64,000 nucleotides of DNA from contig NIVC01000181.1 of the NCBI GenBank assembly GCA_002269645.1, positions 147,547-211,546 of the forward strand, written 5' to 3'. This stretch comes from Macrostomum lignano. Lineage: Eukaryota. Under the pieces are notes generated by a model that did not search any database, had not been told where the DNA came from, and was given only the letters and a program-made list of their open reading frames with translations. This document shows positions 20,450-43,380 of the stretch, one piece after another; the stretch's first letter is position 1, and the number at the start of each line of letters is the position of its first letter. A program made the translations under genes and the position numbers.

Positions 20450-20463
20450 GTTACCATGGCAAC
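20450..20463. promoter_or_regulatory. RFX X-box-like palindrome GTTACCATGGCAAC overlapping the DHCR7 ATG
   Basis: Same 14-mer as at 13049. Confidence 0.4.
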
Positions 20464-21789
20464 CAAACAGTTGAAACAAGCGGAAGGACCTTTGGTGCAA
20501 TTTATCAACCGAACAGTCATACCGCTGCTGCTCATCCTGCTGGTTCCGCAGTCGGTGATGTACCTGTGGTACGCTTCAGTCCACTGTCAGGGCAGCCTGA
20601 CCGAACTGGCAGATCGTCTGACCAATCGGGGTGGACCCGCGCTGGTCTGGGCGGCGGTGAGCGTCGCCAACCCGGCTGTCTACGCTGCCATCCTCGCCTT
20701 CTGCGCCTTCCAGGTGCTGCTGATGCTGCTGGTGCCGGGTAGGACCTGCTACGGCACCGAGACGCCCACAGGTCACGTGCCCGAGTACAAAGACAACGGA
20801 TTCGCGTGCTACCTCATCACCATGGCAACGTTCCTAGCTGGCACGGTCTATCTGAAGCAGCGCGGCCTGACTCCGACAGTGATTTATGATTATTACGGCG
20901 ACTTTCTGGCCTCCATGATTCTGCTGAGCTTGGCCTTCTGCTTGCTCCTGTGCGTCAAAGGCGTCCTGGCGCCGACATCGACTGATCACGGTCGGAGCGG
21001 CAACTACCTGTTCGACTATTACTGGGGCACCGAGCTCTACCCCAGAATATGCGGCATCGACATCAAGGTGTTCACCAACTGCCGCTTCGGTCTGACAGTC
21101 TGGGCCCTGGCTGTCGCTGTGTTCGCCTTGAAAAGCTACGAGTTGCACGGTCGAGTAGTTGACGGCATGGCGGTCACCGCAGCGCTGCAGCTGCTCTACC
21201 TCACCAAGTTCTTCTGGTGGGAGGCTGGCTATTATCGAACAATCGACATCATCACCGACAGAGCCGGATTCTACATCTGCTGGGGCTGTCTGTGCTTCGT
21301 GCCGAGTTTCTACACCCTGGTGAGTCTGTTCATGGTGCGCCAGCCGGAGCCGGTGGGACCCGCGTGGACAGCCGCCCTGCTGGGCTTCGGTCTGGCCAGC
21401 CTGGCCGTCAACTACTGGAGCGATTGGCAAAAGCAGGCGGCCAGAGCCGCGGACGGTCAGCTGAACATCTGGGGCCGGCCGGCGCGGGTGATCAGAGCCA
21501 AGTACAGCCTGGACAATGGCCAGGAGCGCCAGTCTGTACTGCTTGCAAGCGGATTCTGGGCGGTGTCCCGGCATTTCCACTACATCCCGGAGCTCAGCCT
21601 GACCCTGTGCTGGTCAGCTGTGTGCGGAACTGGCTGCCACATCATCCCCTACATGTACTTCGCGTTCCTCAGCGTACTGCTGTTCCATCGAAGCTTCCGC
21701 GACGATAAGAAATGCCGGGACAAGTACGGAAGTACTGGTCCGAGTACTGCAAACTGGTGCCGTACAAGATTGTGCCGCTCCTGTTCTGA
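20456..21789 (+). CDS. DHCR7: 7-dehydrocholesterol reductase (ERG4/ERG24 family, DWF5-like type), intronless; a 1-nt frameshift at ~21731 must be corrected to reach the native stop at 21787-21789
   Basis: Motifs DYYWGTELYPRI, DIKVFTNCRFG, TKFFWWEAGYYRTIDIITDRAGFYICWGCL, SRHFHYIPE and RDDKKCRDKYG. The shifted frame continues YWSEYCKLVPYKIVPLLF*, the canonical family C-terminus. Confidence 0.93.
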
Positions 21790-22431
21790 TTCCCTGCAAT
21801 TCACGGCCAGCTGAAGCAGAAGGACGCTGCAGTCGGCTTTCTTAGAAATACGACAAATACTTCAGTTGCTCGTTATGCAACCTTTCGTTATTAACTGATT
21901 TCATCTTGACTGTTTAACTAATGGCTTCTTCTTATCGAAAATATAGCGTTCTTAGTCCCAAAATAGTGAACTTTAAATGCGGCATGTTTTTTGTCGGTTT
22001 GTTACATTAGATTTTACACTACTAACAGTAGCTCAAGCGAAAAATGGTTGAAAATGTTTTTTTTTAAACGGAAGTAACTGAAAGTAACTGAAATGCTTTT
22101 TTAAAAAAACTGTCACAGATAAACAGGAAAACGAGTTGATTTGCTAGCAGATCTGGGGGCTGCTAATTGGATTTTTTCTGCTTGCCTGGCCATCTCCTTT
22201 TCGCTGATGTCCTTTCCTGTCTGCGTCCGGGCCTGTCTTTTGCGCAAGGCCGAACAGCAAGCCAAGAAGTCAATATCCGCCGCTGCCCAGTATTTACTAG
22301 AAATCCCTGTATATTCAATGTCAAAGTTAATTGAGCTCTGCCGAGAGAACCTCAACACAATTTCTCCCAGCTGATTAGTTTCTACGGTAGCTCAGAGCAG
22401 GGTGAACCGGAGCTCATGATTCAAGAGTAGT

Positions 22432-22965
22432 TGCTGGGCAGTGAGCTCTCGCTATGGGGTCAGCAACTGGGCAGTGAGCTCTCGCTATGGGGTCAGCAAC
22501 TGGGCAGTGAGCTCTCGCTATGGGGTCAGCAACTGGGCAGTGAGCTCTCGCTATGGGGTCAGCAACTGGGCAGTGAGCTCTCGCTATGGGGTCAGCAACT
22601 GGGCATTGAACTCTCTCGCTATGGGGTCAGCAACTGGGCATTGAACTCTCTCGCTATGGGGTCAGCAACTGGGCAGTGAGCTCTCTCGCTATGGGGTCAG
22701 CAACTGGGCAGTGAGCTCTCTCGCTATGGGGTCAGCAACTGGGCAGTGAGCTCTCTCGCTATGGGGTCAGCAACTGGGCAGTGAGCTCTCTCGCTATGGG
22801 GTCAGCAACTGGGCAGTGAGCTCTCTCGCTATGGGGTCAGCAACTGGGCAGTGAGCTCTCGCTATGGGGTCAGCAACTGGGCAGTGAGCTTTCGCTATGG
22901 GGTCAGCAACTGGGCAGTGAGCTCTCTCGCTATGGGGTCAGCAACTGGGCAGTGAGCTCTCGCAG
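22432..22965. repeat. 33/35-bp minisatellite ending at the AG immediately before the guanylate cyclase ATG
   Basis: GGGCAGTGAGCTCTCGCTATGGGGTCAGCAACT. Confidence 0.96.
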
Positions 22966-25900
22966 ATGGGAAATTGCATTAGAAGCCATTACCCTTATCC
23001 GGATCCTGTGCAGCAAGTTTATGGCCGGTGGCTGAATACTTCTCTTTCGCCTAATTGGCCCCAAGACAGTGAGGCCAATCGCAGAAGCAGACCGCCCGCA
23101 AGCATAAAAGCCGGCAGTTTCCCAACTGGTTCAAACTTCGCAGAAGCTGCCGAGATCGCAAAGACAATGTACGGCATCCTACTTGAAGGAGTCCAGCACT
23201 ATCTTGAGCACACCTATGGTGCTCAGGCTTGGGCAAAAATTCGTGAACTAGCCGAGTGTCGGCATCCCACATTCGAGACTCGACGCGGCTACAATGAGCA
23301 TCTGCTGATGCAGCTTTTTGAGGCCGCATCCAGCCTCACTGGCCTGACAGTCGATCAGCTGACATTTGAGAACGGCTGCTTCTTTGTCGGCTACCTGGCC
23401 AAGTACGGCTACGATAAAGTGCTGCGGGTCATGGGCCGCCACCTCAGGGACTTCTACCACGGCATTGACAATCTGCACGAGCACCTGCGCTTTTCATATC
23501 CGCGAATCCGACCGCCCACCTTCATTGTGGCCGACGAGAGTCCCACCGGTGCGGAGCGGGGTGGCTTGTAGCCTTCTAAACTCGACTGGCGCCTCTCTGT
23601 GTCTCACCTGGCGCTTATTTGTGTCTCACCTGTTCTGTCTCTGTGTCTCACCTGGCGCTTATTTGTGTCTCACCTGTTCTCTCTCTGTGTCTCACCTGGC
23701 GCTTATTTGTGTCTCACCTGTTCTCTCTCTGTGTCTCACCTGGCGCTTATTTGTGTCTCACCTGTTCTCTTTCTGTGTCTCACCTGTTCTCTCTCTGTGT
23801 CTCACCTGTTCTCTCTCTGTGTCTCACCTGTTCTCTTTCTGTGTCTCACCTGTTCTCTCTCTGTGTCTCACCTAACGCTTACCTGTGTCTCACCTGTTCT
23901 CTCTTTGTGTCTCACCTGGCGCTTATTTGTGTCTCACCTGTTATCTATCTGCGTCTCACCTGTTCTCTATCTGCTTCTCACCTGTTCTCTAATCTGCGTC
24001 TCACATGTTCTCTCTCTGTGTCTCACCTGTTCTCTCTCTATCTCAACTGGCGCTTATTTGTGTCTCACCTGTTCTCTCTCTGTGTCTCACCTGGCGCTTA
24101 TTTGTGTCTCACCTGTTCTCTCTCTGTGTCTCACCTGTTCTCTCTTTGTGTCTCACCTGGCGCTTATTTGTGTCTCACCTGTTATCTATCTGCGTCTCAC
24201 CTGTTCTCTATCTGCTTCTCACCTGTTCTCTAATCTGCGTCTCACATGTTCTCTCTCTGTGTCTCACCTGTTCTCTCTCTATCTCAACTGGCGCTTATTT
24301 GTGTCTCACCTGTTCTCTCTCTGTGTCTCACCTGGCGCTTATTTGTGTCTCACCTGTTCTCTCTCTGTGTCTCACCTGTTCTCTCTTTGTGTCTCACCTG
24401 GCGCTTATTTGTGTCTCACCTGTTATCTACCTGCGTCTCACCTGTTCTCTATCTGCTTCTCACCTGTTCTCTAATCTGCGTCTCACATGTTCTCTCTCTG
24501 TGTCTCACCTGTTCTCTCTCTATCTCAACTGACGCTTATTTGTGTCTCACCTGTTCTCTCTCTGTGTCTCACCTGTTCTCTCTCTGTGTCTCACCTGTTC
24601 TCTCTCTGTGTCTCACCTGTTCTCTCTCTGTGTCTCACCTGTTCTCTCTCTGTGTCTCACCTGTTCTCTCTCTGTGTCTCAACTGGCGCTTATTTGTGTC
24701 TCACCTGTTCTCTCTCTGTGTCTCACCTGGCGTCTCTCTGCATCTCACCTGGCGTCTCTCTGTGTGTCACCTTGCGTCTCACGGTGTCTCACCTGGCGCT
24801 TCTCTTTGTCTCACCTGGTGCCTATTAGTCTCACCTGGAAGTCTTATAATGAAGCCGTGACAATACTACAATACTTATCTGACCATCTGAAATTCCTCAA
24901 GGCCACTGCTACTCCAGTTGTCAATGGTCTCATCTGGGGGGGGACATGCCTGACGATTAGAAAGTCAGAGGACCCGCTGTACACCCGAAGGTGCTGCAAG
25001 CCGCCTTGACGCCCCCGACACCATTCCAGGCATGCGGATTCTGTACAAGACTCGCCGGCCCGGCTTCCAGCACTACGCCCGGGGCCAGCTGTACACCATA
25101 GCCAGAGTTCTCTACCAGCTGGAGCTGGACATTGGCCTCGTCGACAGTAGCCAGCAGGGCGCCTACAGCCTGTACGTGTACGAGCTCAGATTCGATAACG
25201 TGGCCTACTCGGGCGAGCACAGCACCGCTTATCGAATCATCGATCCCGATTCTTACGTTGTGCCCTACAGGGACTTCATCACCCTGTTCCCTTACTACCT
25301 GGCCTTGGACAGGAGCTTGACAGTCAGCGCTGCTGGCAGCGGGTTTGCCAACATCCTTGGCGAGGCTGCTGACGGGGTCCACTTTGGCATCAACTTCATG
25401 TTGATCAGGCCCTTCATCGACTGCTGCTGGGATGAGGTGAGACAGGCTGGCTGAGTCTGAAGTCTCATATCTGAGTTTATCTCACATCTGAATCTCACCC
25501 AGTCTCATCTCTGAAATCTCAACCAGTCTCACATCTGGAATCTCACCCAGTCTCACATCTGGAATCTCACCCAGTCTCACATCTGGAATCTCACCCAGTC
25601 TCACATCTGGAATCTCACTCAGTCTCATCTCTGAAATCTCAACCAGTCTCACATCTGGAATCTCACCCAGTCTCACATCTGGAATCTCACCCAGTCTCAC
25701 ATCTGGAATCTCACCCAGTCTCACATCTGGAATCTCACCCAGTCTCACATCTGGAATCTCACTCAGTCTCATCTCTGAAATCTCAACCAGTCTCACATCT
25801 GGAATCTCACCCAGTCTCACATCTGGAATCTCACCCAGTCTCACATCTGAAATCTCACCCAGTCTCACATCTGAAATCTCACCCAATCTCACATCTGGAA

Positions 25901-28900
25901 TCTCACCCAATCTCACATCTGAAATCTCGCCCAATCTCACATCTGGAATCTCACCCAGTCTCACATCTGGAATCTCACCCAATCTCACATCTGAAATCTC
26001 GCCCAATCTCACATCTGGAATCTCACCCAGTCTCACATCTGAAAGTGAGACATCTGGCTGCCTCACCTTGAAGCGGCTTAGGCAGACTTATTTCTAATCG
26101 ATATTTCAGCATTACATGTACACAGCTTCAGCCAATAAAAGCAGCCCCTCAATTGCCTACCAATCGCAGTTCCTCAAGCACCGGCACAACATATTCGAAA
26201 TTGCCGCCTACAATCGAACAGTTTCGGCCGGCGGGAAAGCTCAGTGCGCCCCGCCGGACAGGGGACAAACCGGCGACAAGTCCGAGGACACCAGCTTGAG
26301 CCGCTCCGACGACTCAAAGCTTGTGCGGTTCAAGGGCCAGATGATCTACATGCCGACTTGGGACCGGCTGCTTTACATCTGCTCGCCTAGGTTGGCTGAT
26401 AGTGTACTTTTATGCTGACTTTGTTGGATCTCGGATTGAGATTCCAGTCGTAGGATTCAGATTCCAGTCGTAGGATTGAGATTTCAGTCGTAGGATTAAG
26501 ATTCCAGTCGTAGGGTTGAGATTCCAGTTGTACGATTGAGATTCCAGTAGTAGTATTGAGATTCCAGTCGTAGGGTTGAGATTCCAGTCGTAGGATTAAG
26601 ATTCCAATCGTAGGATTAAGATTCCAGTCGTAAGATATAGATTCCAGTAGTTTGATTGAGCTTCCAGTCGTAGGTTTGAAATTCCAGTCGTAGGTTTGAA
26701 ATTCCAGTCGTAGGTTTGAGATTCCAGTCGTAGGTTTGAGATTCCAGTCGTAGGTTTGAGATTCCGGTCGTAGGTTTGAGATTCCAGTCGTAGGTTTGAG
26801 ATTCCAGTCGTAGGTTTGAGATTCCAGTCGTAGGTTTGAGATTCCAGTCGTAGGTTTGAAATTCCAGTCGTAGGTTTGAAATTCCAGTGGTAGAATTCAG
26901 ATTATAAAATCTTAAGAGCCTCCAAAACGAGTTGAGGAAGCCTAGTGTTGAGTCCTGTTTGTACTCGCAAGTTTTCTGTTTAATTTTCAGGCTGAAGAAC
27001 ACGCACGAAATGGCCCTTAAAAACATCTACCTGAACGACTTGAGTCTTCACGATTGCAGCCGGGATTTGACTCTGGCAGGGGATCAGCAATCTGAGGAAC
27101 TGTTTGAGCTGCTGAGACAGGTGAATAAAAATGGATTGGGCGTTGGTTGAGGTCACAGATACTAGAATAGCTAGATGGGCCACTCAGGCACATATACTTA
27201 GTAAAACAGCTTTCTACTTTCAGTTCAGTAGCAAAGAAGAATACATAAGCTTGTTTTATAAAAATAAAGGCAACTGAAATGAATTTGATAAGTTTAGAAG
27301 CCCAAGCTAGCAGGCGTAAACAGCTTGCTAATTGGTTCAGCAATAATGTACATTAGCCAGTCCACTGAAATGTACAAGGCAGATTTAGGGTGGAAGTCCG
27401 AGAAAGGCAATAAAAATTGGGGCGGGGTGGGATAGTGTGGAAAGGCGCGGTCGGGGGGGGGGGGTTTAAGCTGGGGGTAAGAGCCAATAAATGAGCCTTG
27501 GCTTTAAAAGTACAATAAAATATTTTTGTTTAACTGACTACTGAACTGAAAGTAGCTTACACACAGATGTGCTGAGTGGCCCAACTAGTTATTCTAGTAT
27601 CTGTGGTTTAGTTCGGTTAAAGTCAAAACTGGGGAGTCAGAAAATGTAGAAAAAAATTTGTTGTTTCAATTGGTAATTTTTTATACAATTTTTTATATTT
27701 CCGTTAAGTGGTCTCAAAAAAACATTTTTAAAGCACAAAATACACCTCTTAATAAATTTCCTACCCATTTGTTAATCTTTACTTTTACGGAACTGTACGG
27801 ACGCAGAATCAGAAACTAAATAAAGTATTATAAAAATAAATGTTTTATACAAACCCGTAAAAGTAGTTTTTATTTGAAAAAAATTAGGTAAATATTGCAA
27901 TAGATATTTTTTAAATAAATATTAGGCTGGATTTTGTTAAACTGCTTACTTTGTTTACGTCGCGCCTGTTTGTGTTCTGAAATACTCTCGTTAATTTAGT
28001 TATCAGTTTCATGTTAATAAGTACTTTATTTATTATTGATGTTTGGCCTGGTTCTTTTTACGGATGTGAAATATCAGCAAACTTTTTTGGATTGAATTAA
28101 ATATGAGATTTAGATATTGATTACTGACTTCTGTATTTCAAGCATTGCAAACGTCTAGCATCAATTTTCTGCTTATCTATCTAATTCATGAACAATAATC
28201 GATCGAGGATTCTAGATATATGCTTTATTTTATAAGCCACGGCTTATGAATAGGCAAATGACTCATGAGACTGAGGTTTAAATAATTTTACTGAATAGAA
28301 TGACAAATAAAGGTGTCTATCAAGTTTTTTTATAAAATAGCTTTATCCACCCACGCTCTTGTTTAACTATATTTTTGTTCTGAGGCATAATTTGTAGTCT
28401 AGTTCAGATTGCTATTTATATTTAACTGTCCGTGTCTTAGGCCTATTTTATTTTTTGCTAATGACGTAGTAATAAAAAATATAATGTAAATATAAATTTT
28501 TGTACAGCTTTACAGCTTAGAATTACTTCGAAACTGATATATGCTTTTTTACAAAAGCCATTAGGCCTTAGCTAAGTGATAATCTACCTTATGATTACTG
28601 ATAATGATACTGTTTATTATAGCCATCACTATGCACTTTTAAGTATATATATAATTTAAATTGCTAAATAATTAACAAGTAGCAAGTAAAACAGGTAATA
28701 ACTTTTTTTAAACTTTAACTTTATAGTTTCATATAATTTGCAATGTAAAAAGCTATATAAAATGTGACTTGCACTATTCTTTAAAATGTATAATTGCAAT
28801 ATGTTTTCATTTGCATTATTTGTTACATTTATTTCATTTAAAACTCACATTATGAGCTTTAAGAACTTAGAACATGTTAAAAGTTAAAAATGCAAAACCT

Positions 28901-31900
28901 GATATATTTGCTTTTTAAAAAATTAGAAAATAGCAATATTTTATTATATATTTTATTGTTTACAAACTGGCTTTAAATGCCTAGCAGGAGTGTTTCCTTT
29001 TATACTATTGTATATTTAATATACCAATAAATTCTTAACTTGCTTTAGTAGAAGTTTTTTAGACTTAAATGTAAGTAAAATATGTTAAATGTTTTTCACT
29101 TTAATTCATGCCATGCCAGGACTTCTTTGGGAGATCTTCTCAGCTGCATTTTATGATATGCCTTTCATTCTGAGCTCTAAACCTGAGGCCTTACTTAAAC
29201 AATGAAACTGGTGGACTTGCTATATGTTACCTTTACATTTGGTTGAGTGAGTCTAGTGCTTTCTCCATGAACCAACCTGATCTGTCTGAGCAACCTGTTG
29301 CAATGTTGGCGACTCCTGCACCTAGCAGGCCACTTCTGCCCACAACTGGTTCAGGTGCTGCGCTGCTACTTTTGGATTCTGGCACCCAAGATTCTGGTGG
29401 CTATGTGGCCTACATTTTCTCTCAGACCACAAGACACACCTTTTTAGAACCTTATGTTTTATAGTGTGTTTTATTGTATGGGCCTAGTGGCTATACCAAA
29501 AATCTTGTTTTGCATTTAAGTTAATAAAACTTCTGCTTCAGGAATTTATTACTTGTGCCTAAAAATTCTAAAACCTATTTCTGTTGCCTGTTCATCTTTT
29601 TCACTAAATCAAGAGGCATTAAGAGCTTCATTTAGAGCTCTGTGAGATTCACATTTGTATTGAAACTGTTTGGATAGGATCATAACCATGCCCCCCACCC
29701 AGATATCTTTTTTACCCTTCTTGAGGTAGCCATATTGATTTTCTGTTCTGGTCTGTGCAGACTGCTCTATACGTCCATGGCCATAGATTAAAATATTTGA
29801 GCTGATGCTGCTTTATTAATAAAACTTTTTATTATCCGATCAATGTGTTTGGGAAGTCGTGTTTTAAATCGTAGGCTCGTTTACTCGTATATTTGTTGAA
29901 ATTAAGCAAGAGCTCGTCAATCGTTTCGCGCTTGTTCCTGCAGTCTATCAATTGTGGGTCTGTAAGCCAAGCATATACCCATAAACTAATACGTGGCTGC
30001 TGGCAGCCACACATCACAGGTACATAGCTGGTTGAGCTTAAAAAGCACTTATTAGTTATATAAGGAGTATGCTATAGTAAAAATAAAAGCATCCTAGCTT
30101 TCAAAGCTAGAACATTACAACGCTACCACGCTGAAGAGGGCTCGTACTCTCATGCCAGAGCGAACGCAGAAAAGTCGATACAAAAGAGGCCAAATTGCAA
30201 CGTAAAAGTGAAAATAAGGAAGCACATACTGCGCGTGTTCTCAAACTCTGCTCGAGCAGCTCAGATTGGCCCTGCTGAAACTGAAGTGCAGCATACTGCC
30301 AGACTGTGCTCAAAATCTGCTTGTGTCGAACAAAGCTGAGTGACAGAGTCCAACTTGCAGCGATGCGCCAGACTGGATTCTGATCGACTACCCGCCGAAC
30401 ATAAGAGGTGGGGTTCTCTACAATGGTTGTCAATTATGTTGACACAAGTTGTTGCTGCGTGTAGCGATTTGTAGCGATTTTTATTTTCATTCCGTTTCCA
30501 AACAGCTGAAAGGTACATCTGTGGAGATGAACATTTTATTATTAGAGAGATAATGAGTGAACACTTTGTCTGTATTTTTTGCTGTCTTCTTTCTATTCCA
30601 ATAGGATTCTAGCACCATGCAGATTTCAAGATATTAAATTATGAGTTCCAAGTTATTTAAGCATGATTACATAGTCTGTTACAATGCTATAACCTTCATG
30701 ATGCCCCAAAATTATTGATCCTAGGTAAATCTGATGTCAGTTAAGCAGACCAATGAATTTAAAGTAAATTTAAAGTCAATCAGACCTGATTATTTGGTGT
30801 TAGTAAGTGAAATCTGATTAATCTGGTGATCTTAGACTAGAATTGCTAGTCATAAAAAATTTTAAGTGATGGTCAATAAAAAGATGTTTAAAGTAATTTT
30901 TACAAAATTTACCTCAAATTATTCAGTATGAAATAAGCAGAATAACTATCATTTAAAATAAATAAAGCCTAATTCATTACAAAATATACATTAAATGGCA
31001 ATAAAATTATATTAGGTTGTCCCTGCTGCAAAGCCAAAAAAATGCTTCTTTATAGGGTTCTTTGCAGTGCCTTGAGGAAATATCTAAGCTTTTCATTGTA
31101 CATGCTCCACACAGTGGGCTTCCGGAGAAAAAAATCATGACAAAAACTAACATTTATGGCATTTAAGAGCCAACAAAGAGTACCATTTAGTAAAGAAAAA
31201 AAATGCTTCAAGCTTGATAGGTGTGTAATAACATATTTCAATTCTAAAAGCTGGCAATTATTCATTTTGATGCAACAGACTACTGGAGAAAATCACTTTG
31301 TGCTCTCTAACTATTAAAAAGTATTTTTATATTGTTATAGAATGGTTATACAATAAGTAATATATTAGGCTTTTTCAATAAAAAGCATCGATTTTATGCT
31401 AAATTATTTTCTAAAATGTAAAAGTGAATAATCCAATTGGATACATCAATTTAGATTAGTTTTTAACATATTCTCATATGAGCATATAGGTGGGATGTCA
31501 TAATCAATGTTTACTACCAAAACGAAGAATATTCGAACTACAGTAAGGTTTATACAAATAAAGCATTACTCATGCATGCATTTAATGCAAATTAACTTAA
31601 AACTTTCACCAACTACATTAATTCATACATTTTTAGCCCTTATTTGTAAATTATATAGAATTTTTTTCACACGTGTTCAACGTGGTTGAATTTCCGCCAA
31701 AAAAATTATCGCTGAAAAGGACATATTTTGTCTTTTAGAGGAGCGAAAAAGACTAATTTTACTTAGATTATAGTAAAATTATTTATAATTCACAGTTTAA
31801 TGCAAGATTTAACCGGCCATACTCATTAGAAAACAGATACAATTTGGTATTACAAAGTTTGAATGGTGTAAACTCGCGATGCCCTCGTTTTGACTTTGCC

Positions 31901-34900
31901 CCAGTTATGGATGATTTATTAAATTTGAATTCCCGAATTCCTGTCTCCAGCAACAAGAGCGGACCCGTCAGATGGAGCTGAGCATGCGGAAGCTGGACCG
32001 AGAGAGGAAGCGGGCGGACAGCCTTCTGTTTGAATGCCTGCCGAAGTCCGTGGCCAGGAAACTGCGGAAAGGACTCGATCCCATGACTACGATTAAGGTG
32101 CATTGCGCAGCCTGCTCAAAGCTCCCGTCTTCGAAACCACACGGACCTCAATGTTCCACTCACGTTAAATCAGCACTCGTAGGGGGGGGGGGGGTGCGGG
32201 CTTGACTTACTTGACTCAGCTGCAGGGGGCTCCGTGCATCCGGATGCAGCGAGAAGGCGTTGCCGCCCATTTCGCTAGCCCCTGGCGACCACGGGCAGCT
32301 GCGGTGTCGCGTAGGGAGATCCGGTGGTGCCGGTGTCCGCAGCGCGGTCCCCCTCCGGAGAGTCCAGGAGGTGGATTGTCGCTCGCCCGGTGGCCCTTAG
32401 GTAGTGGACGAGCTGGCAGAGATTCCCGGGCCTGAAAACGTCGGAGAGGTCCGGGTTGGTGCCGAGGTAGGTGAGCCTGTCTTGAGTAGGCGGGGCATTC
32501 ACAGATAGTGTTCCGCATTCTCGACACCGGAGAGGCAGAAAGGGGATGCCTCACTGCGGATTTTCCCCGGAGGTGGCGATGCCTGGCAAAACAGCCGTGA
32601 CCCGAGAGGGCCATGGTCACCGCCCTGATGTCCCTGCGGTTGAGTCTAAGCAGGGCTCTGCGAGGTCAAAAATTTTGCGATAATTGCACCTGCAGAGCCT
32701 TGAAGACGATGACATGCAAATCTTTGGTTCTATCCGATCTGTCTCAATTAAATGCCCTCTCATACCTGAATCTTAAAAGTCTGATAAAATTATTTATCTA
32801 ACTTCACAGAATGTGACGCTCTAATTACGGCAGGCACGAGAATGTCACAGACAAAAAGACACCGCCACATTTTTATGATGTTGATCTGACAGGTAGATTA
32901 ATTGCCTTTGCAATGAAAAGTTCAGATCTCCTCAGACTTCAGTACTCTGTGGCACTAGGCATATGTAGGTTCTCCCACCGAGACTTGATCCTTTGAGATT
33001 CTCCCATTGAGCCTTAATCCTCTGAGATTCTCCCATTGAGACTTGATCCTCTGAGATTCTCCCACCGAGATTTTATCCTTTGAGATTCTCCCACCGAGAC
33101 TTGATCCTCTGAGATTCTCCCACCGAGATTTGATCCTTTGAGATTCTCCCATTGAGAATTGATCCTCTGAGATTCTCCCATTGAGACTTGATCCTCTGAG
33201 ATTCTCCCATTGAGACTTGATCCTTTGAGATTCTCCCATTGAGACTTGATCCTCTGATATTCTCCCACCGAGACTTGATCCTTTGAGATTCTCCCATTGA
33301 GACTTGATCCTCTGAGATTCTCCCACCGAGATTTGATCCTTTGAGATTCTCCCATTGAGAATTGATCCTCTGAGATTCTCCCATTGAGACTTGATCCTTT
33401 GAGATTCTCCCACCGAGACTTGATCCTCTGATATTCTCCCACCGAGATTTGATCCTTTGAGATTCTCCCATTGAGACTTGATCCTCTGATATTCTCCCAT
33501 TGAGAATTGATCCTCTGAGATTCTCCCATTGAGACTTGATCCTCTGATATTCTCCCATTGAGACTTGATCCTCTGAGATTCTCCCATTGAAACTTGATCC
33601 TCTGAGATTCTCCCATTGAGACTTGATCCTCTGAGATTCTCCCATTGAGACTTGATCCTTTGAGATTTTCCCATTGAGACTTGATCCTTTGAGATTCTCC
33701 CATTGAGACTTGATCCTCTGATATTCTCCCATTGAGACTTGATCCTCTGAGATTCTCCCATTGAGACTTGATCCTCTGAGATTCTCCCATTGAAACTTGA
33801 TCCTCTGAGATTCTCCCATTGAGACTTGATCCTCTGAGATTCTCCCATTGAGACTTGATCCTTTGAGATTTTCCCATTGAGACTTGATCCTTTGAGATTC
33901 TCCCATTGAGACTTGATCCTCTGATATTCTCCCATTGAGACTTGATCCTCTGAGATTCTCCCATTGAGACTTGATCCTCTGAGATTCTCCCATTGAGACT
34001 TGATCCTCTGAGATTCACCACCAAGATTTGATCCCTGAAAATCTTCATAAAATCTGCTACAATCAACACCTGATCCATTATTCGAGCTAAACTTTAAATA
34101 AACAATTCTTTTCAGACGCACGAAAGCGTGAGCATCTGCTTCAGCAAAGTGGTCGACTTCCAGGAGATCTGCCGCCAGCTATCTGTGACCGACATTGTCA
34201 ATCTGCTCAACACCATGTACACCAGGTTCGACATGCGACTCGAGAAGCACCAGGTGTACAAGGTAAGACTTCTTAATTTAGTATCCGAATGACGAAAACT
34301 GGACCGCATCATTGTGTCTCTGAATTAAGAAAACTGGACCGCATCATTGTGTCTCTGAATTAAGAAAACTGGACCGCATCATTGTGTCTCTGAATTAAGA
34401 AAACTGGACCGCATCATTGTGTCTCTGAATTAAGAAAACTGGACCGCATCATTGTGTCTCTGAATTAAGAAAACTGGACCGCATCATTGTGTCTCTGAAT
34501 TAAGAAAACTGGACCGCATCATTGTGTCTCTGAATTAAGAAAACTGGACCGCATCATTGTGTCTCTGAATTAAGAAAACTGGACCGCATCATTGTGTCTC
34601 TGAATCATGAAAACTGGACCGCATCATTGTGTCTCTGAATCATGAAAACTGGACCGCATCATTGTGTCTCTGAATTAAGAAAACTGGACCGCATCATTGT
34701 GTCTCTGAATTAAGAAAACTGGACCGCATCATTGTGTCTCTGAATTAAGAAAACTGGACCGCATCATTGTGTCTCTGAATTAAGAAAACTGGACCGCATC
34801 ATTGTGTCTCTGAATCATGAAAACTGGACTTCATCATTGCATCCCCATCGCAAACTCAACAGGTGGAAACCATCGGTGACTCGTACATGCTGATGTCGGG

Positions 34901-37153
34901 CGCGCCGCGGGCCACGCCTTACCACGCGGCGCACATCGCCGAGATGGCTCTGGACATGCTGGCCGAGGCGCACCGGATTGTTCGGCCGTCCGGCGACTCC
35001 TCGCCGACCGGAGCGGCCGATACGGCCGCGGTCGAGCCGCTGCGCATTCAGGTGGGCTGTCACTCCGGCAGCATTGTGGCTGGCGTGGTCGGCCTGATGA
35101 CGCCCCGTTACTGCCTGTTCGGCGACACGGTCAACGTGGCCTCCAGAATGATGACCTGCGGCCGGCCGGACTCCGTGCACATCAGCGCCAGCTTCCAACG
35201 CTGCATCGACGACTTCCCGTACGAGGTTGAACAGAGGGAGCCGGTACACGTGAAGGGCAAGGGTCGTATGGTTACCTATTACCTGCTGGGCAGGTCCGGC
35301 AAGGTGAGCACGACTGTCTATAAAGGAATTAACTGAGTGACAGATGGATTAGCTGAGTGACAGATAGATTAACTGAGTGACAGATGGATTAGCTGATTGA
35401 CAGATGGATTAGCTGAGTGACATATGGATTAGCTGAGTGACAGATAGATTAGCTGAGTGACAGATAGATTAGCTGAGTGACAGATGGATTAGCTGAGTGA
35501 CAGATGGATTAGCTGAGTGACAGATGGATTAGCTGAGTGACAGATGGATTAGCTGAGTGACAGATAGATTAGCTGAGTGACAGATGGATTAGCTGAGTGA
35601 CAGATAGATTAAGTGAGTGACAGATGGATTAGCTGAGTGACAGATGGATTAGCTGAGTGACATATGGATTAGCTGAGTGACATATGGATTAGCTGAGTGA
35701 CAGATGGATTAGCTGAGTGACAGATGGATTAGCTGAGTGACGGATGGATTAGCTGAGTGACGGATGGATTAGCTGAGTGACAGATGGATTAGCTGAGTGA
35801 CCCCAAGGACGAACGCGCACTCCACCTTCAGTCGAACCTGGAGTACCAGCAGCTGACGGAGTGGCTGGATATCGACCGCAACAAGCTGGACGAGAGCTCG
35901 GACGAGAACACGGACAACACGACCACGGCCTCGGCCAGTCAGACTCTGCAGCGAATTTGCCGAGAGGTGGCCGCCGCGGGCGATTCGGACAGCGACTCGG
36001 ACGCGGAGGCGGCCACGCTCAGCTGCAGTGGCCGAACGGGCAGCCGGTGCCGCCACCTGCTGCGGCCGCCGGTCAGCGACATCCGGGGACCTCGCCGACT
36101 GTGCCGCCGACATCGCCGGAGCAGGAGCTTTCAGACTGGCGACGTCGGCGGCAGGGCCTCCTCCGTGTCGATTTCCATTCCAGGAGTCCTAGACGATTCG
36201 TCGTCCTCGTCAGCCGAGGACGTCAGCCGGTGCCAGTCCGAAGGCGGTGGCATCGGAGGCGGCAGCAGCGGCACCCTGACGGAGATCAAAAGCATCTGCA
36301 GCGACGAGCAGAACCCAGACTTTGCTGATGAAGCCGAAGCAGCTGTGGCGGAAGAGGCTGCGGCAAGTGGTGGTGCAAAGCAAGTGAAGTTTCATCTTTC
36401 ATCGACGCTGCCGCCGCCTCCTCAGCCTCCATCATCGGCAACGACACCGTCATCTTCTTTGCTGTTGATGTCGCGCAGTTTTCCGCGCCGACTGCGCCGA
36501 GCGGAAGCGGCCAGACCGCTGCTTGTGCAGCCGGAAGCGCCGCCTCAGGCCGCCGCCGCAGCCGTGGACATGCGCTACCGCAGCTTCCCGTGGGAGCTCA
36601 GAGCCGTGGGTGAGTGGGAAATGCTGTTTGATAAAGCTCAGCTTCCTTATTCTACTGAATCTTATAGAGAACGCAAGGGAGGGCTCAATACTCGTTTGCA
36701 GTTGGAGACGAGTAAAAAGACTGCAAGGGTGAGAGGGAGTAGGGAAGGGTGAGAGGGAGCTTGGGGAAGAGTGGGAGGGAGACGGGAAGAGTGAGAGGGA
36801 GAGGGGAAGAGTGAGAAGGAGTGAGGCTGGATTAGCGAAGGAGAAGGGGCAGCTTAGCTAGTAAAAATGAGATAGACAGTTTGAGACGGAGATAAAGACA
36901 TCGAGAGCACAGTAGTAAACTTGAAAAGTTCATCCTACTCATTGACTATCGCAGATAGACTATTTCTATAGTAAAAGCTGCAACAACCTCACTCCCCACT
37001 GCAGCCAAGGCCCTGTCTCTGGGCGTAGCCGAGGTGGCCCTGCGCCGGCCCCGCGATCCAATTGAGTACCTGGCCCTGTGGCTGCGAGACTACCTGGCCA
37101 GGAACGGACTGGAAGGCTATGGCAACGGCGCTACAGAGGGAAATCAAAATTAA
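22966..37153 (+). CDS. Atypical (Gyc-88E-like) soluble guanylate cyclase, ~1008 aa, with a C-terminal DPY-30-like domain; exons 22966-23548, 25030-25436, 26170-26390, 26991-27120, 31951-32097, 34116-34262, 34863-35303, 35808-36609, 37005-37153
   Basis: H-NOX (MYGILLE at 23167, [34 protein letters not shown]), PAS/HNOBA ([27 protein letters not shown]), coiled coil ([15 protein letters not shown]) and cyclase domain (VYK|[32 protein letters not shown]). All eight introns are GT-AG with matching phases and the exons sum to 3027 nt. Exons 8-9 and the N-terminal extension are less certain than the core. Confidence 0.88.
23590..24835. repeat. ~22-bp minisatellite (guanylate cyclase intron 1)
   Basis: GTGTCTCACCTGTTCTCTCTCT / GTGTCTCACCTGGCGCTTATTT. 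Confidence 0.96.
25480..26045. repeat. 24-bp minisatellite (guanylate cyclase intron 2)
   Basis: CACATCTGGAATCTCACCCAGTCT. Confidence 0.96.
26430..26895. repeat. 20-bp minisatellite (guanylate cyclase intron 3)
   Basis: ATTCCAGTCGTAGGTTTGAG. Confidence 0.96.
27153..27606. mobile_element. MITE, ~450 bp (copy 2), 32 bp downstream of the guanylate cyclase exon 4 donor
   Basis: Alignable over its full length to 12094-12544, with the same TIRs. Confidence 0.8.
32280..32700 (-). mobile_element. Degenerate 3' end of a non-LTR retrotransposon (R1/LOA-like) in guanylate cyclase intron 5
   Basis: Across frameshifts the minus strand reads [29 protein letters not shown]...[19 protein letters not shown]...VHYLRATGR, a typical LINE ORF2 C-terminal CCHC region. 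Confidence 0.7.
32970..34030. repeat. 29-bp minisatellite (guanylate cyclase intron 5)
   Basis: GAGACTTGATCCTCTGAGATTCTCCCATT. Confidence 0.97.
34293..34830. repeat. 35-bp minisatellite filling guanylate cyclase intron 6
   Basis: GAAAACTGGACCGCATCATTGTGTCTCTGAATTAA. Confidence 0.97.
35325..35800. repeat. 20-bp minisatellite filling guanylate cyclase intron 7
   Basis: CAGATGGATTAGCTGAGTGA. Confidence 0.97.
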
Positions 37154-37285
37154 CAGTCGCTTTTTGTGTTAATAACGTTAATGATTGATTTAGAACGGGA
37201 AGTCCTGATGAATTAGGTAGACAGTGAGGTAACTTTCATTTCCTCGATCATCAAATATCATAGAACTAAAAAAATACAAGTTTAT

Positions 37286-38000
37286 AAGCTCTGAAATTCT
37301 ACAAGCTCTGAAATTCTACAAGCTCTGAAATTCCACAAGCTCTGAAATTCTACAAGCTCTGAAATTCTGCAAGCTCTGAAATTCTGCAAGCTCTGAAATT
37401 CTACAAGCTCTGAAATTCCACAAGCTCTGAAATTCTACAAGCTCTGAAATTCTGCAAGCTCTGAAATTCTACAAGCTCTGAAATTCTACAAGCTCTGAAA
37501 TTCTAAAAGCTCTGAAATTCTACAAGCTCTGAAATTCTACAAGCTCTGAAATTCCACAAGCTCTGAAATTCCACAAGCTCTGAAATTCTAAAAGCTCTGA
37601 AATTCTACAAGCTCTGAAATTCTACAAGCTCTGAAATTCCACAAGCTCTGAAATTCCACAAGCTCTGAAATTCCACAAACTAGTAATTCAATAAGCTCTG
37701 AAATTCCACAAACTAGTAATTCAATAAGCTCTGGAATTCCACAAACTAGTAATTCAATAAGCTCTGAAATTCCACAAACTAGTAATTCCACAAGCTCTGA
37801 AATTCCACAAGCTCTGAAATTCTAAAAGCTCTGAAATTCTACAAGCTCTGAAATTCTACAAGCTCTGAAATTCCACAAGCTCTGAAATTCCACAAACTAG
37901 TAATTCAATAAGCTCTGAAATTCCAAAAACTAGTAATTCAATAAGCTCTGGAATTCCACAAACTAGTAATTCAACAAGCTCTGAAATTCCACAAACGAGT
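37286..38000. repeat. 17-bp minisatellite with ~30-bp variants
   Basis: AAGCTCTGAAATTC(T/C)AC. Confidence 0.96.
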
Positions 38001-38094
38001 AATTTAACAATCTCGAAACCCACAAGCTTTAAACGTACATTATCCTAAACAAATATTTTAAACTTAAAGCCAGTTTGTCATCAGCTAGCTGAAA

Positions 38095-38157
38095 GGGAAT
38101 CGAACTCGGGCGGCTGGTCCGCCCAAGGCTTGACTTCACCCATTAGCTACTCTGCAC
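38095..38157 (-). mobile_element. tRNA-derived SINE head or tRNA pseudogene
   Basis: The minus strand has an A-box-like TAGCTAATGG and a B-box GAGTTCGATTCCC, but no clean cloverleaf. Confidence 0.4.
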
Positions 38158-38629
38158 ACAACTCCTACTTCTACTCTGTGCTCTTGCGTGGCGTCATTTC
38201 TTTGCCCGCCATGCAAGCGTTTCGCGCAACACTCTACACTTTCTACTTATCAGTAGATGAACTCTGATACACTAATAAAATTAAACTCGCTTATGATACG
38301 GTGTGAACAAGATTTATAGTTAATGCATAAATTCCATTATCAACCAGCTTTGTACTCGTATTTTAGTAACTGTATTTACAAAAATACTAAATAGTCTTGC
38401 TTAAATTCCAAGACCTTTGAACTGCATATTGCACTACTGTGAGTAAGCAGAATAGAGGAGAATTACCTCAAGCAAAAAAGCAAAAGTTAAAAAGGTGAGA
38501 TTTTTTCAAAAGCATCAAAAGCATTAACAAAAATATTTCAAAATCGCAAAAGGATACTTACAAAACCTATTCTGGAGCATATGGAATGTCTTTATTTTTT
38601 TGTCATCAGAATAAAACGCATGTCTCGGA

Positions 38630-39104
38630 TCATACATGCGCAACCTTGGGAATCACTCGGCCGTTTCTATTGGCAATACACACATGTAAGTCGCTATTGG
38701 CTGAGAGCAGTCACGTGACTACTATTCCGTCCAATAGCGACTTACATGTGTGTGTTGCCAATAGAAACGGCCGGGTGAATCCCTAGGTTGCGCCCAAGCA
38801 TGTCTCGGATGACCTTGAGAAATTTTACTTCAGAGGGAAATTTTATTAATAAATGTTCGTTTTAGGGTTTAACAGTAAGAGTTATCCTTCAAACGGGTGG
38901 CCTTGAGGAATCCATCATTAAGCGCTTAGTATCATGCTTAGGCGCAACCTAGGGATTCACCCGGCCGTTTCTATTGGCAACACACACATGTAAGTCGCTA
39001 TTGGACGGAATAGTAATCACGTGACTGCTCTCAGCCAATAGCGAATTACATGTGTGTGTGTTGTCAATAGAAACGGCCGAGTGATTCCCATGGTTGCGCA
39101 TGTA
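38630..39104. mobile_element. Foldback/MITE-like element made of two inverted ~156-bp arms, each itself a near-perfect palindrome centred on CACGTG
   Basis: 38638-38793 is self-complementary, and 38942-39099 is its reverse complement. Confidence 0.65.
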
Positions 39105-39106
39105 TA

Positions 39107-40446
39107 CTAGGGTCGTCAGAAAAGTTCTGTGTATTAGAGAATAGCTCAGCTCTATGAATAGCTGAAGAGTTGGGGTTTTAGCCATAGATATATACATATA
39201 TAAAGAGTCGCTAGCTTCAGTTTTAGAGCAACAGATCATTTCTAGCCAAAATAGCAGTAATTTTTCAACCACACCCATGGCGCATTCCGTCCCGCGAGAG
39301 AGTTTTTCTAAACGCGACAATCGAGCGATCATCAAGTTTCATGTCCTTCAGGGGCGTTCAGCAACCGAGATTTTTGAAGAAATGCGGCAGACCATAGGAG
39401 ACTTTTGCCCATCTTATGAGACGATTCGCCGCTGGGCTATTGCCATTCGCAACGGTAAAGAAGACCTCGACGACAAGCCACGCAGTGGACGACCAACGAG
39501 TGCTCGGCCTGACAGCCTGGTGAGTCAGGTGGAGGCAGCCGTGCTGCAGGACCGGATACTGACCACCAGGCAGCTGGCTGATGCCATAGGGGTGTCCAAG
39601 GACTCAGTCCACAAGATCCTGACCGAGGACCTTGGGATGCGCAAGGTCTGTGCCAAGTGGGTGCCGCATCTGCTCACTGACGATCAGCGGGCTCGGCGGG
39701 TCGCCATGTGCGCATCCAACCTGCAGCGGTGTCGGCGGGAGGGCATGGCGTTCCTGCAGAGGATCGTTGCCTGCGACGAAACCTGGGCGCATTCTTGGGA
39801 GGCGGAGTTGAAGCGGCAGAGTGCCACATGGTGCAGGCCAGGTTCTCCGCGACCTCAAAAGGCCATCCGGAGCATCGGCCAGCTGAAGGTCATGCACGTG
39901 ACTTTCTTCGACTGGGAGGGTCTGTTGTTCGATCAGCCTGTGCCAGTGAGGCAGACGGTCAATGGTGATTTCTACCGTCGGTTCTGGTGAAAGTTCGGCG
40001 TGCCATTCGGGACAAAAGACCTGCACTTCACGCGGCTGGCCAGACTCTGCTTCACGACAACGCAGCCCCGCACCGAAAGCAAGCGTGCTGGCTACGATCG
40101 AGTCGTGGGGGTGGGAAATTCTTCCGCATCCGCCTTATTCCCCGGACTTAAGTCCATGCGACTTTTTCCTCTTCCCTCGCATCAAGGAGTCGATGCGAGG
40201 CCAGCGTTTCAGCACAGAGGAAGACGTGAATCAGGCCTACAAGGCTGGCATTGCCGCCGTGACGAACAATGGCATGACTACAGGCATTGACGGGCTGGTG
40301 CGGCGTTGGGAGAAGTGTATTGAAGCTGAGGGCTCATACTTTGAGTGAATAGATGTTAAGGAAGACATTTGTAACTTTTCATGTTTCTACTGTTTATCGT
40401 TCTCAAGTTATTACAATATACACAGAACTTTTCTGATATCAGTTAG
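39107..40446 (+). mobile_element. Mariner (DD34D) DNA transposon, ~1.34 kb; transposase 39277-40348 is broken by two frameshifts (~39980 and ~40075)
   Basis: HTH region, WVPHLL, CDETW, HDNA and PHPPYSPDLSPCDFFLF motifs. The TIR core TCAGAAAAGTTCTGTGTA is present at both ends, with TA at 39105-06 and 40447-48. Confidence 0.93.
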
Positions 40447-40807: not shown

Positions 40808-43380
40808 TTAGCCCATAGACTGCTGCTGCCCAGCCCCGTCGCCGCCCTGCAGAAATATGCTGTTATAGAGCTGCTCAGACGGTAAAAACCATTTATCAAC
40901 AACAATAAAAGTCTGATCAGAGCTGGAACTGCAGCAGCTGGACGTGCTGCAGAGTCGCCAGCCAGTAGCCCGCAGCAGCGAGGCCCATTCAAGTCGGCTC
41001 TTGCTGGCGTCTGAGTTCAGGTACACCTCCTCCATGCTGCCCTTCACCCAGGCGGTGTAGAATGGCAGCGGGGCGCAGAACTGGCTGAGCATCGGCGCTG
41101 GCTGGGTGAGGCGGGCGAGTTCGGTGTCAAATGGGGGCACGGATTTCAGATAGGCCAGCGGCCCGGTCAGGCTGGTGGTGATGTGAAAGCCGCGAAAGCA
41201 GACTACATTGTCCTTCACCTGCAGGCGCGGAGGTGGCACTGCCGGTTATTCACGATTGTTCTTAATTTGGTACACCGCTGCAGTCATGTGAAAACCTTAG
41301 CGCACACCCAGGCCTATTTCTAATTAGCCCAAGGCGGTCACGTGACATTAGACCACATCCAGACCCACTTCTAATTGGCCGAGAGCGGTCACGTGACAGA
41401 CAACATTAGCCCACAAACAGAAACAGGCCCATTTCTAATTGGCCGAGAGCGGTCACGTGACAAAATTGCCTACAACTAGGAGCAACTCTAATTGGCTTTA
41501 GAGCGGTCACGTGACGGAGCAGTCCGTGTGCTGCCAGTAAAAAACGGCCGGGTGATTCCTAAAGTTCCTCATGATAATCAAGTCAAATATAATGGATTGC
41601 ACCACAAATGAATTCCCACAAATTTTGTCCGGTTCGACTCACTTCCAAATAGACGCCTTTGGCCCGGCTGGCCGCGTAGCCACCCAGCCAATCGCGGAGC
41701 TGCTGCACCAGCGGCTGGATCTGATAGAATTCCGCCTCGGCTAGCAGCGCCTCGCCCTCGGAAAATCCGTCCGGCAGGCTGAGGCGGCCGTTTCTAAGAA
41801 AGTTCAACACGTGACGAAACAGATTGCCGTCGCGATCGATTGCGGCCGGATTATTCAATCGAAATCGATCGGAGAACATGGCGCCAAGCATGGAGTCGGG
41901 GTAGCGGGTCAGGGTAGACAAGGAGGTTGAGTAGCGGGTGCCGCCTACGTCCAGCGTTATCAGCGAGCCTGCGGAGGTGGGGAGTTGGGAGGATTGCTCG
42001 ATTGAAGGCTGGCTGACTGTCTTCGTGCCGATCTGTCTGCCTAACTCTTTTTAATCCCTCAAATGTGGCTTAGTTTATCTAAAAAATGACCTTGGGAACT
42101 CCCTCACATGTGGCTTAGTTTATCTAACAAATGACCTTGGGAAATCCCTCGCATGTGGCTTAGTTTATCTAAAAAATGACCTTGGGAAATCCCTCACATG
42201 TGGCTTAGTTTATCTAACAAATGACCTTGGGAACTCCCTCGCATGTGGCTTAGTTTATCTAAAAAATGACCTTGGGAAATCCCTCGCATGTGGCTTAGTT
42301 TATCTAACAAATGACCTTGGGAAATCCCTCGCATGTGGCTTAGTTTATCTAAAAAATGACCTTGGGAAATCCCTCACATGTGGCTTAGTTTATCTAACAA
42401 ATGACCTTGGGAACTCCCTCACATGTGGCTTAGTTTATCTAAAAAAACGACCTTGGGAAATCCCTCGCATGTGGCTTAGTTTATCTAACAAATGCCCTGG
42501 GGACTCCCTCACATGTGGCTTAGTTTATCTAACAAATGACCTTGGGAACTCCCTCACATGTGGCTTAGTTTATCTAACAAATGACCTTGGGAACTCCCTC
42601 ACATGTGGCTTAGTTTATCTAACAAATGACCTTGGGAACTCCCTCACATGTGGCTTAGTTTATCTAAAAAACGACCTTGGGAAATCCCTCGCATGTGGCT
42701 TAGTTTATCTAACAAATGACCTTGGGAAATCCCTCACATGTGGCTTAGTTTATCTAACAAATGACCTTGGGAACTCCCTCACATGTAGCTTAGTTTATCT
42801 AACAAATGACCTTGGGAAATCCCTCACGTGGCTTAATTACTCGTAGTTTATCTAACAAATGACCTTGGGAAATCCCTCGCATGTGGCTTAGTTTATCTAA
42901 CAAATGACCTTGGGAAATCCCTCACATGTGGCTTAGTGACAATCGGTCAGCCCGAACCACAGAGCACTCACTCTGCTCATCTGCACAGGACTCCAAGCTG
43001 ATATTTGCCTCAGTTGATGAAGCTTTTGCAGTCTCAGCAGATTCGGCAGTTTCTCTTAGCTGCAGCAGGCAGTTTCGCAGTTCAGGCAGGCAATAGAAGT
43101 CGCTGTCTTCTAGCAGCAGATGAAATTTGGCCGATCCAACCGATTCAATGTCCAGAGGTGAGCGTCGATAGCGCAGAAAGTTGAGCACCAAGCCGAAGGT
43201 GTCGGGATCGCGGTCGATGCACACGGCGCCGTCAGAGTCAGCGATGCTGCGCAGCTGGCCACGGGCCAGACGGCACAGGAGGCTCTCAGGCCAGGGCGCG
43301 AGAGTCTGCAAGAACACCTGGTGCCGCCGCCCACCAACATTGAATATGACTAGGCCACTGGTCGAATCGAAGCTGCTCAT
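40808..43380 (-). CDS. KCTD-family protein with two tandem BTB/T1 domains, ~381 aa; exons 43380-42972, 41968-41643, 41218-40808
   Basis: BTB1: VIFNVGGRRHQVFLQTL...CIDRDPDTFGLVLNFLR. BTB2: ITLDVGGTRYSTSLSTLTRYPDSMLGAMF...IDRDGNLFRHVLNFLRNGRL...EAEFYQIQPL. Both donors are GTGAGT, acceptors are CCGCAG and CTGCAG, phases are 1 and 0, and the exons sum to 1146 nt. Confidence 0.8.
41293..41566. mobile_element. Relative of the 38630-39104 element in KCTD intron 2, with four CTAATT(G/A)G..GGTCACGTGAC units
   Basis: The right end AAACGGCCGGGTGATTCCTAAAGTT resembles the end of the 38638-38793 arm, and the ATTGG-N11-CACGTG unit recurs internally. Confidence 0.55.
42055..42935. repeat. 45-bp minisatellite in KCTD intron 1
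   Basis: CCCTCACATGTGGCTTAGTTTATCTAACAAATGACCTTGGGAAAT. Confidence 0.97.

Follow-up and report, generated by a model that had tools for sequence, protein, structure and literature searches.

Introduction

Soluble guanylate cyclases are usually regarded as freely diffusing cytosolic sensors, and the spatial confinement of the cyclic guanosine monophosphate (cGMP) that they produce is an open question. The locus described here raises this question in a concrete form: can a cyclase of this family carry a docking device within its own polypeptide chain? The locus lies in a 64-kb stretch (64,000 nucleotides, hereafter the window) of the genome of the flatworm Macrostomum lignano (assembly Mlig_3_7, contig NIVC01000181.1), where positions 23167-37153 of the plus strand encode a soluble guanylate cyclase. 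A first-pass annotation of the window, made from the nucleotide sequence without database searches, had proposed that this cyclase is fused at its end to a DPY-30 domain and is held by it on a scaffold. We consider it quite probable that this is one nine-exon gene for a beta-type soluble guanylate cyclase, that its last intron leads to a C-terminal Dpy-30 domain of the DYDC/RSP2 type, and that this tail docks the enzyme on a scaffold. A cyclase subunit that brings a docking module of its own would solve the problem of cGMP confinement from within. Modules of this kind anchor enzymes in the radial spokes of cilia, and this one is conserved among flatworms.

The Dpy-30 exon and its junction with the cyclase

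The splice signals at the end of the gene had been correctly recognized: there is a G/GTGAGT donor at 36609/36610, a CTGCAG acceptor with its last base at 37004 and a TAA stop at 37151-37153 (here and below the slash marks the splice junction). Joined in phase 1, exon 9 reproduces without a difference the C-terminal end of BOX15_Mlig007736g1 (P0001, 546 aa), a GenBank protein derived from RNA-seq, which holds the cyclase domain, the entire linker and the exact FPWELRAV/AKALSLGV junction, and whose precomputed annotation is PF00211 plus PF05186. The 25-kb locus fetched for this best protein match is base-for-base identical to the window from 21972 onward. The M. lignano gene models are STAR/StringTie/TACO assemblies of RNA-seq reads with TransDecoder frames, and they were cut at sites with evidence of trans-splicing or poly(A) (PMC5730564); the 36609/37005 junction is therefore transcript-derived and not purely predicted from sequence. 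Upstream, the first-pass reading stands in part. Exon 8 is indeed free of stops and in frame with the cyclase, but in the transcript model that carries the 36609/37005 junction, position 35303 joins 35832 (GRSGK/SNLEYQQ) and not 35808. The acceptor at 35807/35808 is in frame, yet it is not used by the RNA-seq-derived model, and the acceptor at 35831/35832 has a better pyrimidine tract.

The domain encoded across this junction was earlier assigned to the DPY-30 motif of DYDC1/2, and this assignment is confirmed by several comparisons. Exon 9 alone matches Pfam Dpy-30 (PF05186, threshold 22 bits) with 31.2 bits (E 1.8e-7). A profile of 20 stand-alone DYDC-type domains, from which the window's own sequence was excluded, matches it with 58 bits when the 3002 six-frame pieces of the window are scanned (E 8e-17). 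The spliced tail reaches 62.1 bits with this profile vs 57.2 bits for exon 9 alone, its match extending further into the profile, and the product of read-through at the donor does not match the profile at all. The solved structures with the best sequence matches to the tail are DYDC1 (9fqr), Chlamydomonas RSP2 (7jrj) and DYDC2 (8j07, 8wzb), with DPY30 itself ranking well behind them. The tail was compared exhaustively with 1.8 billion representative proteins and matched 25 of them, 24 of which are short DYDC-type proteins with 50-62% identity; the remaining one (P0089) is a repeat artefact. Two word-indexed searches were uninformative: the one with the 69-aa tail yielded a single candidate and scored none, and the one with the DYDC profile returned only stand-alone fragments of 48-90 aa, which say nothing about architectures.

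The tail keeps all 11 invariant columns of the DYDC-type set, among them L, G, E, P-x-D-P-x-E-Y-L and W, is 47-56% identical to the 20 stand-alone members and bears the signature of the DYDC/RSP2 subfamily; the N-terminal part of its domain has a 5-aa insertion before helix 1. The RIIa domain, whose fold had been invoked for comparison, did not match the tail in Pfam scans at E up to 10, and Dpy-30 was matched instead. The AlphaFold2 model of the tail (mean pLDDT 86) has helices at residues 10-29 and 34-49. In this model helix 1 begins at the Trp-Glu-Leu encoded by exon 8 and crosses the splice junction, so exon 9 by itself could not form the domain. Foldseek found the radial-spoke DYDC2, RSP2 and the DPY-30/ASH2L complex as the best structural matches, with TM-scores of 0.6-0.7, rmsd of 1-2 A and probabilities near 1, the weak E-values being due to the shortness of the domain. 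Sequence comparison and the predicted fold thus place the tail among the Dpy-30 domains, in the DYDC/RSP2 group.

A second match of the DYDC-type profile in the window, at 42055-42998 on the plus strand, was rejected. A 45-nt unit is repeated there in tandem; its translation, YLKNDLGKSLACGL, recurs about 17 times and mimics helix 1 by chance. The repeat falls inside the span of a minus-strand BTB gene.

Conservation of the fusion in flatworms

The first-pass annotation knew of no other cyclase with this domain and suggested a search in other flatworms. The architecture is not a one-off: PF00211 and PF05186 already stand together in public annotation, and the fusion is found in at least four fluke species, in schistosomatids and in Opisthorchis viverrini. 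Three annotated schistosomatid cyclases end in Dpy-30, namely P0002 of Schistosoma turkestanicum, P0004 of Heterobilharzia americana and P0010 of Trichobilharzia regenti. Their tails follow the pattern ...F[KR]DLAQ/PLCLA[LI]TE[LV]LI[IV][RK]PK.PI.YL[AG][IL]WL[KR]NY and score 26-28 bits with our DYDC profile. For the isolated fluke tails, Dpy-30 is the best Pfam match, and no other family is matched with an E-value below 0.2. In O. viverrini (KL596816.1), a Dpy-30 terminal exon sits between two tandem cyclase genes. One of them, T265_14460 (P0056, partial), ends at a phase-1 GTAAGT donor and extends in frame via one internal exon to the Dpy-30 terminal exon (...LLGEV-A-EVLSLGLTEMMIVNPPDPITYLGKWM... 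followed by a stop). These two extra exons lie at about 33939-34031 and 39090-39203 of the O. viverrini locus (span 31110-39203) and end in Dpy-30 and the stop. The second gene of the tandem, T265_08029, has no Dpy-30 exon within 10 kb downstream.

The last intron is in phase 1 and splits an Ala codon at the same place in M. lignano (G/CC), O. viverrini (G/CT) and H. americana (G/CT). A phase-1 intron is at the same place in S. japonicum, where the split codon G/AT encodes Asp. The terminal Dpy-30 exon of S. japonicum (SKCS01000282.1, locus positions 26090-26160) is recognizable as DQLLCLALTESLIIQ; it was not counted as an intact domain because of a frameshift after LCLALTESLIIQ, before the P-x-x-P-I-x-Y-L part, and the public model P0008 reads through the donor that precedes this exon. 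In H. americana, the second paralogue (P0005) runs into a TAA stop, and 33 bp further on a Dpy-30-bearing gene model begins within the same exon but in a different frame, so that the two models are kept apart by one frameshift. Both H. americana cyclase paralogues are split into adjacent models 33 bp apart (68009-68044 and 9968-10001 of their loci), and the frameshift at 68009-68044 adjoins an A-rich run within one exon.

None of the 60 or more non-flatworm cyclases returned as relatives has a Dpy-30 domain. In a rough neighbour-joining tree, the M. lignano protein is sister to a clade of flukes and monogeneans. Judged by these sequences, the fusion was already present in an ancestor of Macrostomorpha and Neodermata, if not earlier. 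The fused module starts where stand-alone DYDC proteins start: RYR of the tail aligns with SEY of MDSEYLK, and schistosomatids keep QYR at this place. This points to an old event, in which a cyclase gene likely acquired its tail by fusing with the 5' end of a gene of the DYDC kind. The comparison also corrects several public models, namely the 3' end of T265_14460 of O. viverrini, the split models of H. americana and the 5'-truncated model of M. lignano.

Gene structure, haem sensor and catalytic site

The exon model was built from tblastn matches with fluke orthologues and inspection of splice sites. It consists of nine GT-AG exons collinear with those of the orthologues and gives a product of 933 aa, which replaces the 1008-aa protein proposed at first. 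Pfam finds HNOB (140 bits), HNOBA (173 bits), Guanylate_cyc (190-191 bits) and Dpy-30 (27.3 bits) in this product, which upholds the initial identification of a soluble guanylate cyclase; the order of parts is HNOB-HNOBA-coiled coil-cyclase-linker-Dpy-30. Exon 1 (23167..23548), delimited by tblastn, its GT donor, the frame and the 140-bit HNOB match, carries the start ATG, the N-terminal part of HNOB and the haem-ligand residue His-104 (23476-23478). Exon 2 (25030..25436) completes HNOB, to which it contributes the Y-x-T-x-R haem-propionate motif (Y133, T135, R137), and opens HNOBA, which continues through exons 3 (26170..26390) and 4 (26991..27120), both defined by tblastn, splice sites and Pfam. 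Exon 5 (31951..32097) encodes the coiled coil and contains, 21 nt past its acceptor, the ATG at 31972 with which BOX15_Mlig007736g1 begins. The cyclase domain starts in exon 6 (34116..34262, boundaries according to BOX15_Mlig007736g1) and is completed in exon 7 (34863..35303). Exon 8 (35832..36609) encodes a post-cyclase motif and then a linker of about 250 aa, and its last 13 codons open the Dpy-30 domain. Intron 8 (36610..37004, GTGAGT...CTGCAG, phase 1) splits the codon of Ala-885, and exon 9 (37005..37153) encodes the main body of the Dpy-30 domain and an 18-aa tail up to the TAA stop. The whole region after the cyclase domain, ending in Dpy-30, amounts to about 310 aa; the linker within it is rich in Ser, Ala and Arg and is probably disordered.

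The short motif directly after the cyclase domain (35832-35870) is present in all clade members and reads NFSQVLEEDIY, DFTEVLKYDD or NFAEVLKEDM in flukes. It resembles an amphipathic helix and, judged from its sequence, could be an internal ligand of the Dpy-30 domain.

Human beta-1 aligns with the M. lignano protein over 622 residues (310 bits). His-104 aligns with the haem ligand His-105 of beta-1, and Y133-K-T135-R-R137 aligns with Y135-x-S137-x-R139 of beta-1, with Thr in place of Ser. In the cyclase domain, the second metal-binding Asp (Asp-484), the guanine-specifying pair Glu-480/Cys-562, Asn-569 and Arg-573, all encoded by exon 7, are kept, and the first metal-binding Asp is replaced by Lys-440 (CFSKVV; 34146-34148 in exon 6), which leaves the single-chain catalytic set incomplete. 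The first-pass description of a gas-sensing cyclase is thus supported as far as the intact HNOB and HNOBA are concerned, and is not borne out as that of a self-sufficient enzyme. Lys at this position (CF[ST]KV) is common to all eight flatworm clade members that cover it (the others being P0002, P0004, P0005, P0006, P0008, P0009 and P0010); of the ten non-flatworm relatives aligned, nine have Asp and one has Glu. For the alpha-1/beta-1 cyclase it is established that a subunit lacking the first Asp can take part in no more than a single, shared active site, for which its partner has to supply both Asp residues. The M. lignano subunit is therefore beta-like and would be expected to function solely together with a partner that bears this Asp. 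No partner subunit or second cyclase gene is present within the window. The database names of relatives (beta-2-like, Gyc-88E, gcy-31, GUCY1B) are automatic and, like the sequence itself, do not decide between nitric oxide (NO) and O2 as the ligand.

The sole accessible transcript model of the gene starts at Met 31972, and exons 1-4 carry no annotated gene. It is conceivable that the main product, or an additional one, is a 546-aa isoform trans-spliced at the exon 5 acceptor and devoid of the haem sensor, in which case the docked cyclase would not sense gases. The position of the first ATG 21 nt past the acceptor is typical of trans-spliced mRNAs, and S. turkestanicum P0002 starts at the homologous Met. 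We nevertheless consider this scenario unlikely. Exons 1-4 show no damage, their splice sites are canonical and HNOB and HNOBA are matched over their full length, so these exons are under selection; the fluke models P0005, P0006 and P0056 connect HNOB to the cyclase domain; and the 4.8-kb repeat-rich intron 4, together with low expression, can account for a 5'-truncated assembly.

The start at the homologous coiled-coil Met shared by the public models of the two species (31972 in the window; MEKSMQHLEKIRK in S. turkestanicum) could be a common truncation artefact or could mark a genuine shorter product that lacks the haem domain.

How the tail may dock the cyclase

The Dpy-30 domain would pair with a second Dpy-30 domain to form a four-helix bundle, and this bundle would clamp an amphipathic helix of a scaffold, which may be RSP3-like or AKAP-like. 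Pairing and helix clamping are proposed because Dpy-30 domains do both in every solved context returned by our searches, and docking on an amphipathic-helix scaffold is, by this analogy, what we infer for the cyclase tail. The long linker would then let the cyclase dimer, in which the beta-like subunit would be paired with an Asp-bearing partner as beta-1 is with alpha-1, produce cGMP at a fixed place, most likely in a compartment that is ciliated or sensory, although the cilium as the site is at present guesswork. Considering the likeness to DYDC and RSP2, the RSP3-type radial-spoke helix is a candidate ligand and may serve as a lead.

A more far-reaching and rather doubtful version is that the protein is a haem gas sensor built into a motile or sensory cilium. 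The tail would sit on an RSP3-type helix or a ciliary AKAP, O2 or NO would set the local level of cGMP and thereby ciliary beat or sensory gain, and this arrangement would have been kept since before the split of free-living and parasitic flatworms. Transgenesis exists in M. lignano.

Several points weigh against the proposal of a docked, gas-sensing cyclase. The fluke tails reach only 17.7-23.9 bits with Pfam Dpy-30. The frameshifts in the tails of S. japonicum (one assembly) and H. americana could be assembly errors or could reflect real decay. The haem sensor and Dpy-30 are placed on one M. lignano mRNA by collinearity of intact exons, the transcript model itself starting in exon 5. We found no expression, localisation or binding data, and Mlig007736 is absent from the full texts searched and from the supplements of two M. 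lignano papers. Finally, a heterodimer would carry a single Dpy-30 domain unless the partner has one as well.

The Dpy-30 domain may alternatively be a second dimerisation clamp, or a link between two cyclase dimers, with no docking involved. Dpy-30 domains are obligate dimers in solved structures, cyclase domains are active solely as dimers, and no scaffold partner emerged from the analysis. However, a flexible linker of about 250 aa is poorly suited to stabilise a catalytic dimer that is already held by the coiled coil, and the solved contexts returned (ASH2L, Bre2 and the radial-spoke complexes among them) all show the Dpy-30 dimer gripping a helix of a partner. We regard a clamp without docking as quite improbable and prefer docking on a scaffold helix.

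One gene or two

The first-pass annotation itself had named a rival to a single gene for cyclase and tail, a separate small gene beginning at MRYRSF. Such a gene would encode a 62-aa DYDC-like protein from Met 36570, would have its own promoter or spliced-leader site, and the fused frame would be an artefact of a precursor transcript. In its favour, MAFFT places DMRY of the tail opposite MDSEY, with which stand-alone DYDC proteins begin, polycistronic precursor transcripts are numerous in M. lignano (PMC5730564), and one H. americana annotation places the tail in a separate gene model. Yet of the possible frames, that of the cyclase alone is open through the 246 codons upstream of Met 36570, and these codons show signs of coding: in these 738 nt of exon 8, which precede Met-872, a frame stays open in only 0.14% of shuffles, and third-position GC and codon score are both highest in the cyclase frame. 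The annotation pipeline makes cuts at trans-splice sites (PMC5730564) and left one coding sequence here. Schistosomatids and O. viverrini encode the homologous segment in an internal exon that continues the frame of the cyclase tail, with Gln opposite the M. lignano Met, and the H. americana split stems from the single frameshift in one exon described above. A separate gene for the tail is thus very improbable.

A chance frame or a decayed pseudo-exon, which the shortness of the domain and the chance profile match of the unrelated tandem repeat at 42055-42998 might suggest, is effectively refuted by the 58-bit score with the self-excluded profile, the retention of all invariant DYDC residues, the RNA-seq-derived junction and the conservation of position and intron phase across distant flatworms.

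Comparison with known systems

The closest relatives of the tail, DYDC1/2 and RSP2, share with it the best sequence matches, the invariant residues and the predicted two-helix fold. They differ in that their domain is N-terminal and is followed by a coiled coil or other regions, whereas in M. lignano it is at the extreme C-terminus of an enzyme, has the 5-aa insertion and lacks a DYDC-like continuation. The closest parallels in design are adenylate kinase 7 and NME5/RSP23, enzymes fused to Dpy-30 and anchored in axonemes. They too are nucleotide-handling enzymes tethered via a Dpy-30 docking module, but they are kinases and the M. lignano enzyme is a class III cyclase. Association with radial spokes has been reported for AK7 and Dpy-30 proteins (PMC4395127, PMC12399478).

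The cyclase part resembles soluble guanylate cyclase beta-1 (GUCY1B1) and the beta-2/Gyc-88E/GCY-31 type in its HNOB-HNOBA-coiled coil-cyclase order, the haem His, the Y-x-S/T-x-R motif, the Glu/Cys pair, Asn and Arg. The first metal-binding Asp is absent from both beta-1 and the M. lignano protein, with Gly in the former and Lys in the latter, and the M. lignano protein further differs from the beta types in its tail of about 310 aa with Dpy-30. In Caenorhabditis elegans, atypical soluble guanylate cyclases reach sensory endings via the DPY-30 scaffold ARCP-1 or C-terminal prenylation (PMC6953435), so localisation of a cyclase by a C-terminal device has a precedent. Both the ARCP-1 (ankyrin plus DPY-30) and the prenylation/PDL-1 systems place cGMP enzymes at sensory endings or cilia; there, however, Dpy-30 is on a separate scaffold and the cyclase is lipid-anchored, while in M. 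lignano Dpy-30 is within the cyclase chain. The PKA RII-alpha/AKAP system belongs to the same class of four-helix docking bundles that bind an amphipathic helix, and AKAP18/RII-alpha is found among the weak structural matches of the tail (ranks 35-37), far weaker than Dpy-30 domains.

Our literature searches returned no description of a cyclase with a Dpy-30 domain, and the Cryptocotyle study does not mention the fusion in its text or supplements. With both Pfam domains present in public annotation, the architecture is undescribed rather than unseen. Fusions of enzymes to Dpy-30 are already known from adenylate kinase 7 and NME5, and what is new is a gas-sensor cyclase of such design. Expression of beta-like cyclases in flukes has been reported for a small number of apical neurons, the ganglia and the surface of the cercarial tail (PMC10728431). 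The presence of the same subunit family in the neurons and tail of free-swimming fluke larvae may bear on host-finding by the parasites.

Surroundings of the gene in the window

The cyclase gene is embedded in repeats. Minisatellite arrays, each of them distinct, mostly fill six of its eight introns and both flanks; they lie at 22434-22961, 23593-24837, 25480-26041, 26433-26903, 32970-34016, 34287-34839, 35328-35801 and 37286-37994, with periods of 17-35 nt and 241 nt and 15-56 copies. Several of these arrays yield long spurious frames on the minus strand, e.g., at 32955-34121.

Upstream on the plus strand, an exon with a polycystin domain (14157-14819, 30 bits) was found, so a PKD-like gene may lie there, followed by a single-exon frame for an ERG4/ERG24-family sterol reductase (20456-21814, 452 aa, 196 bits). 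Downstream, the plus strand bears a remnant of a Mos1/mariner-type transposase (39277-40348) in two overlapping frames with matches to Pfam HTH_48, HTH_32 and part of Transposase_1, and the minus strand bears a BTB_2 (KCTD-like) gene (40808-43380, 381 aa in the public record).

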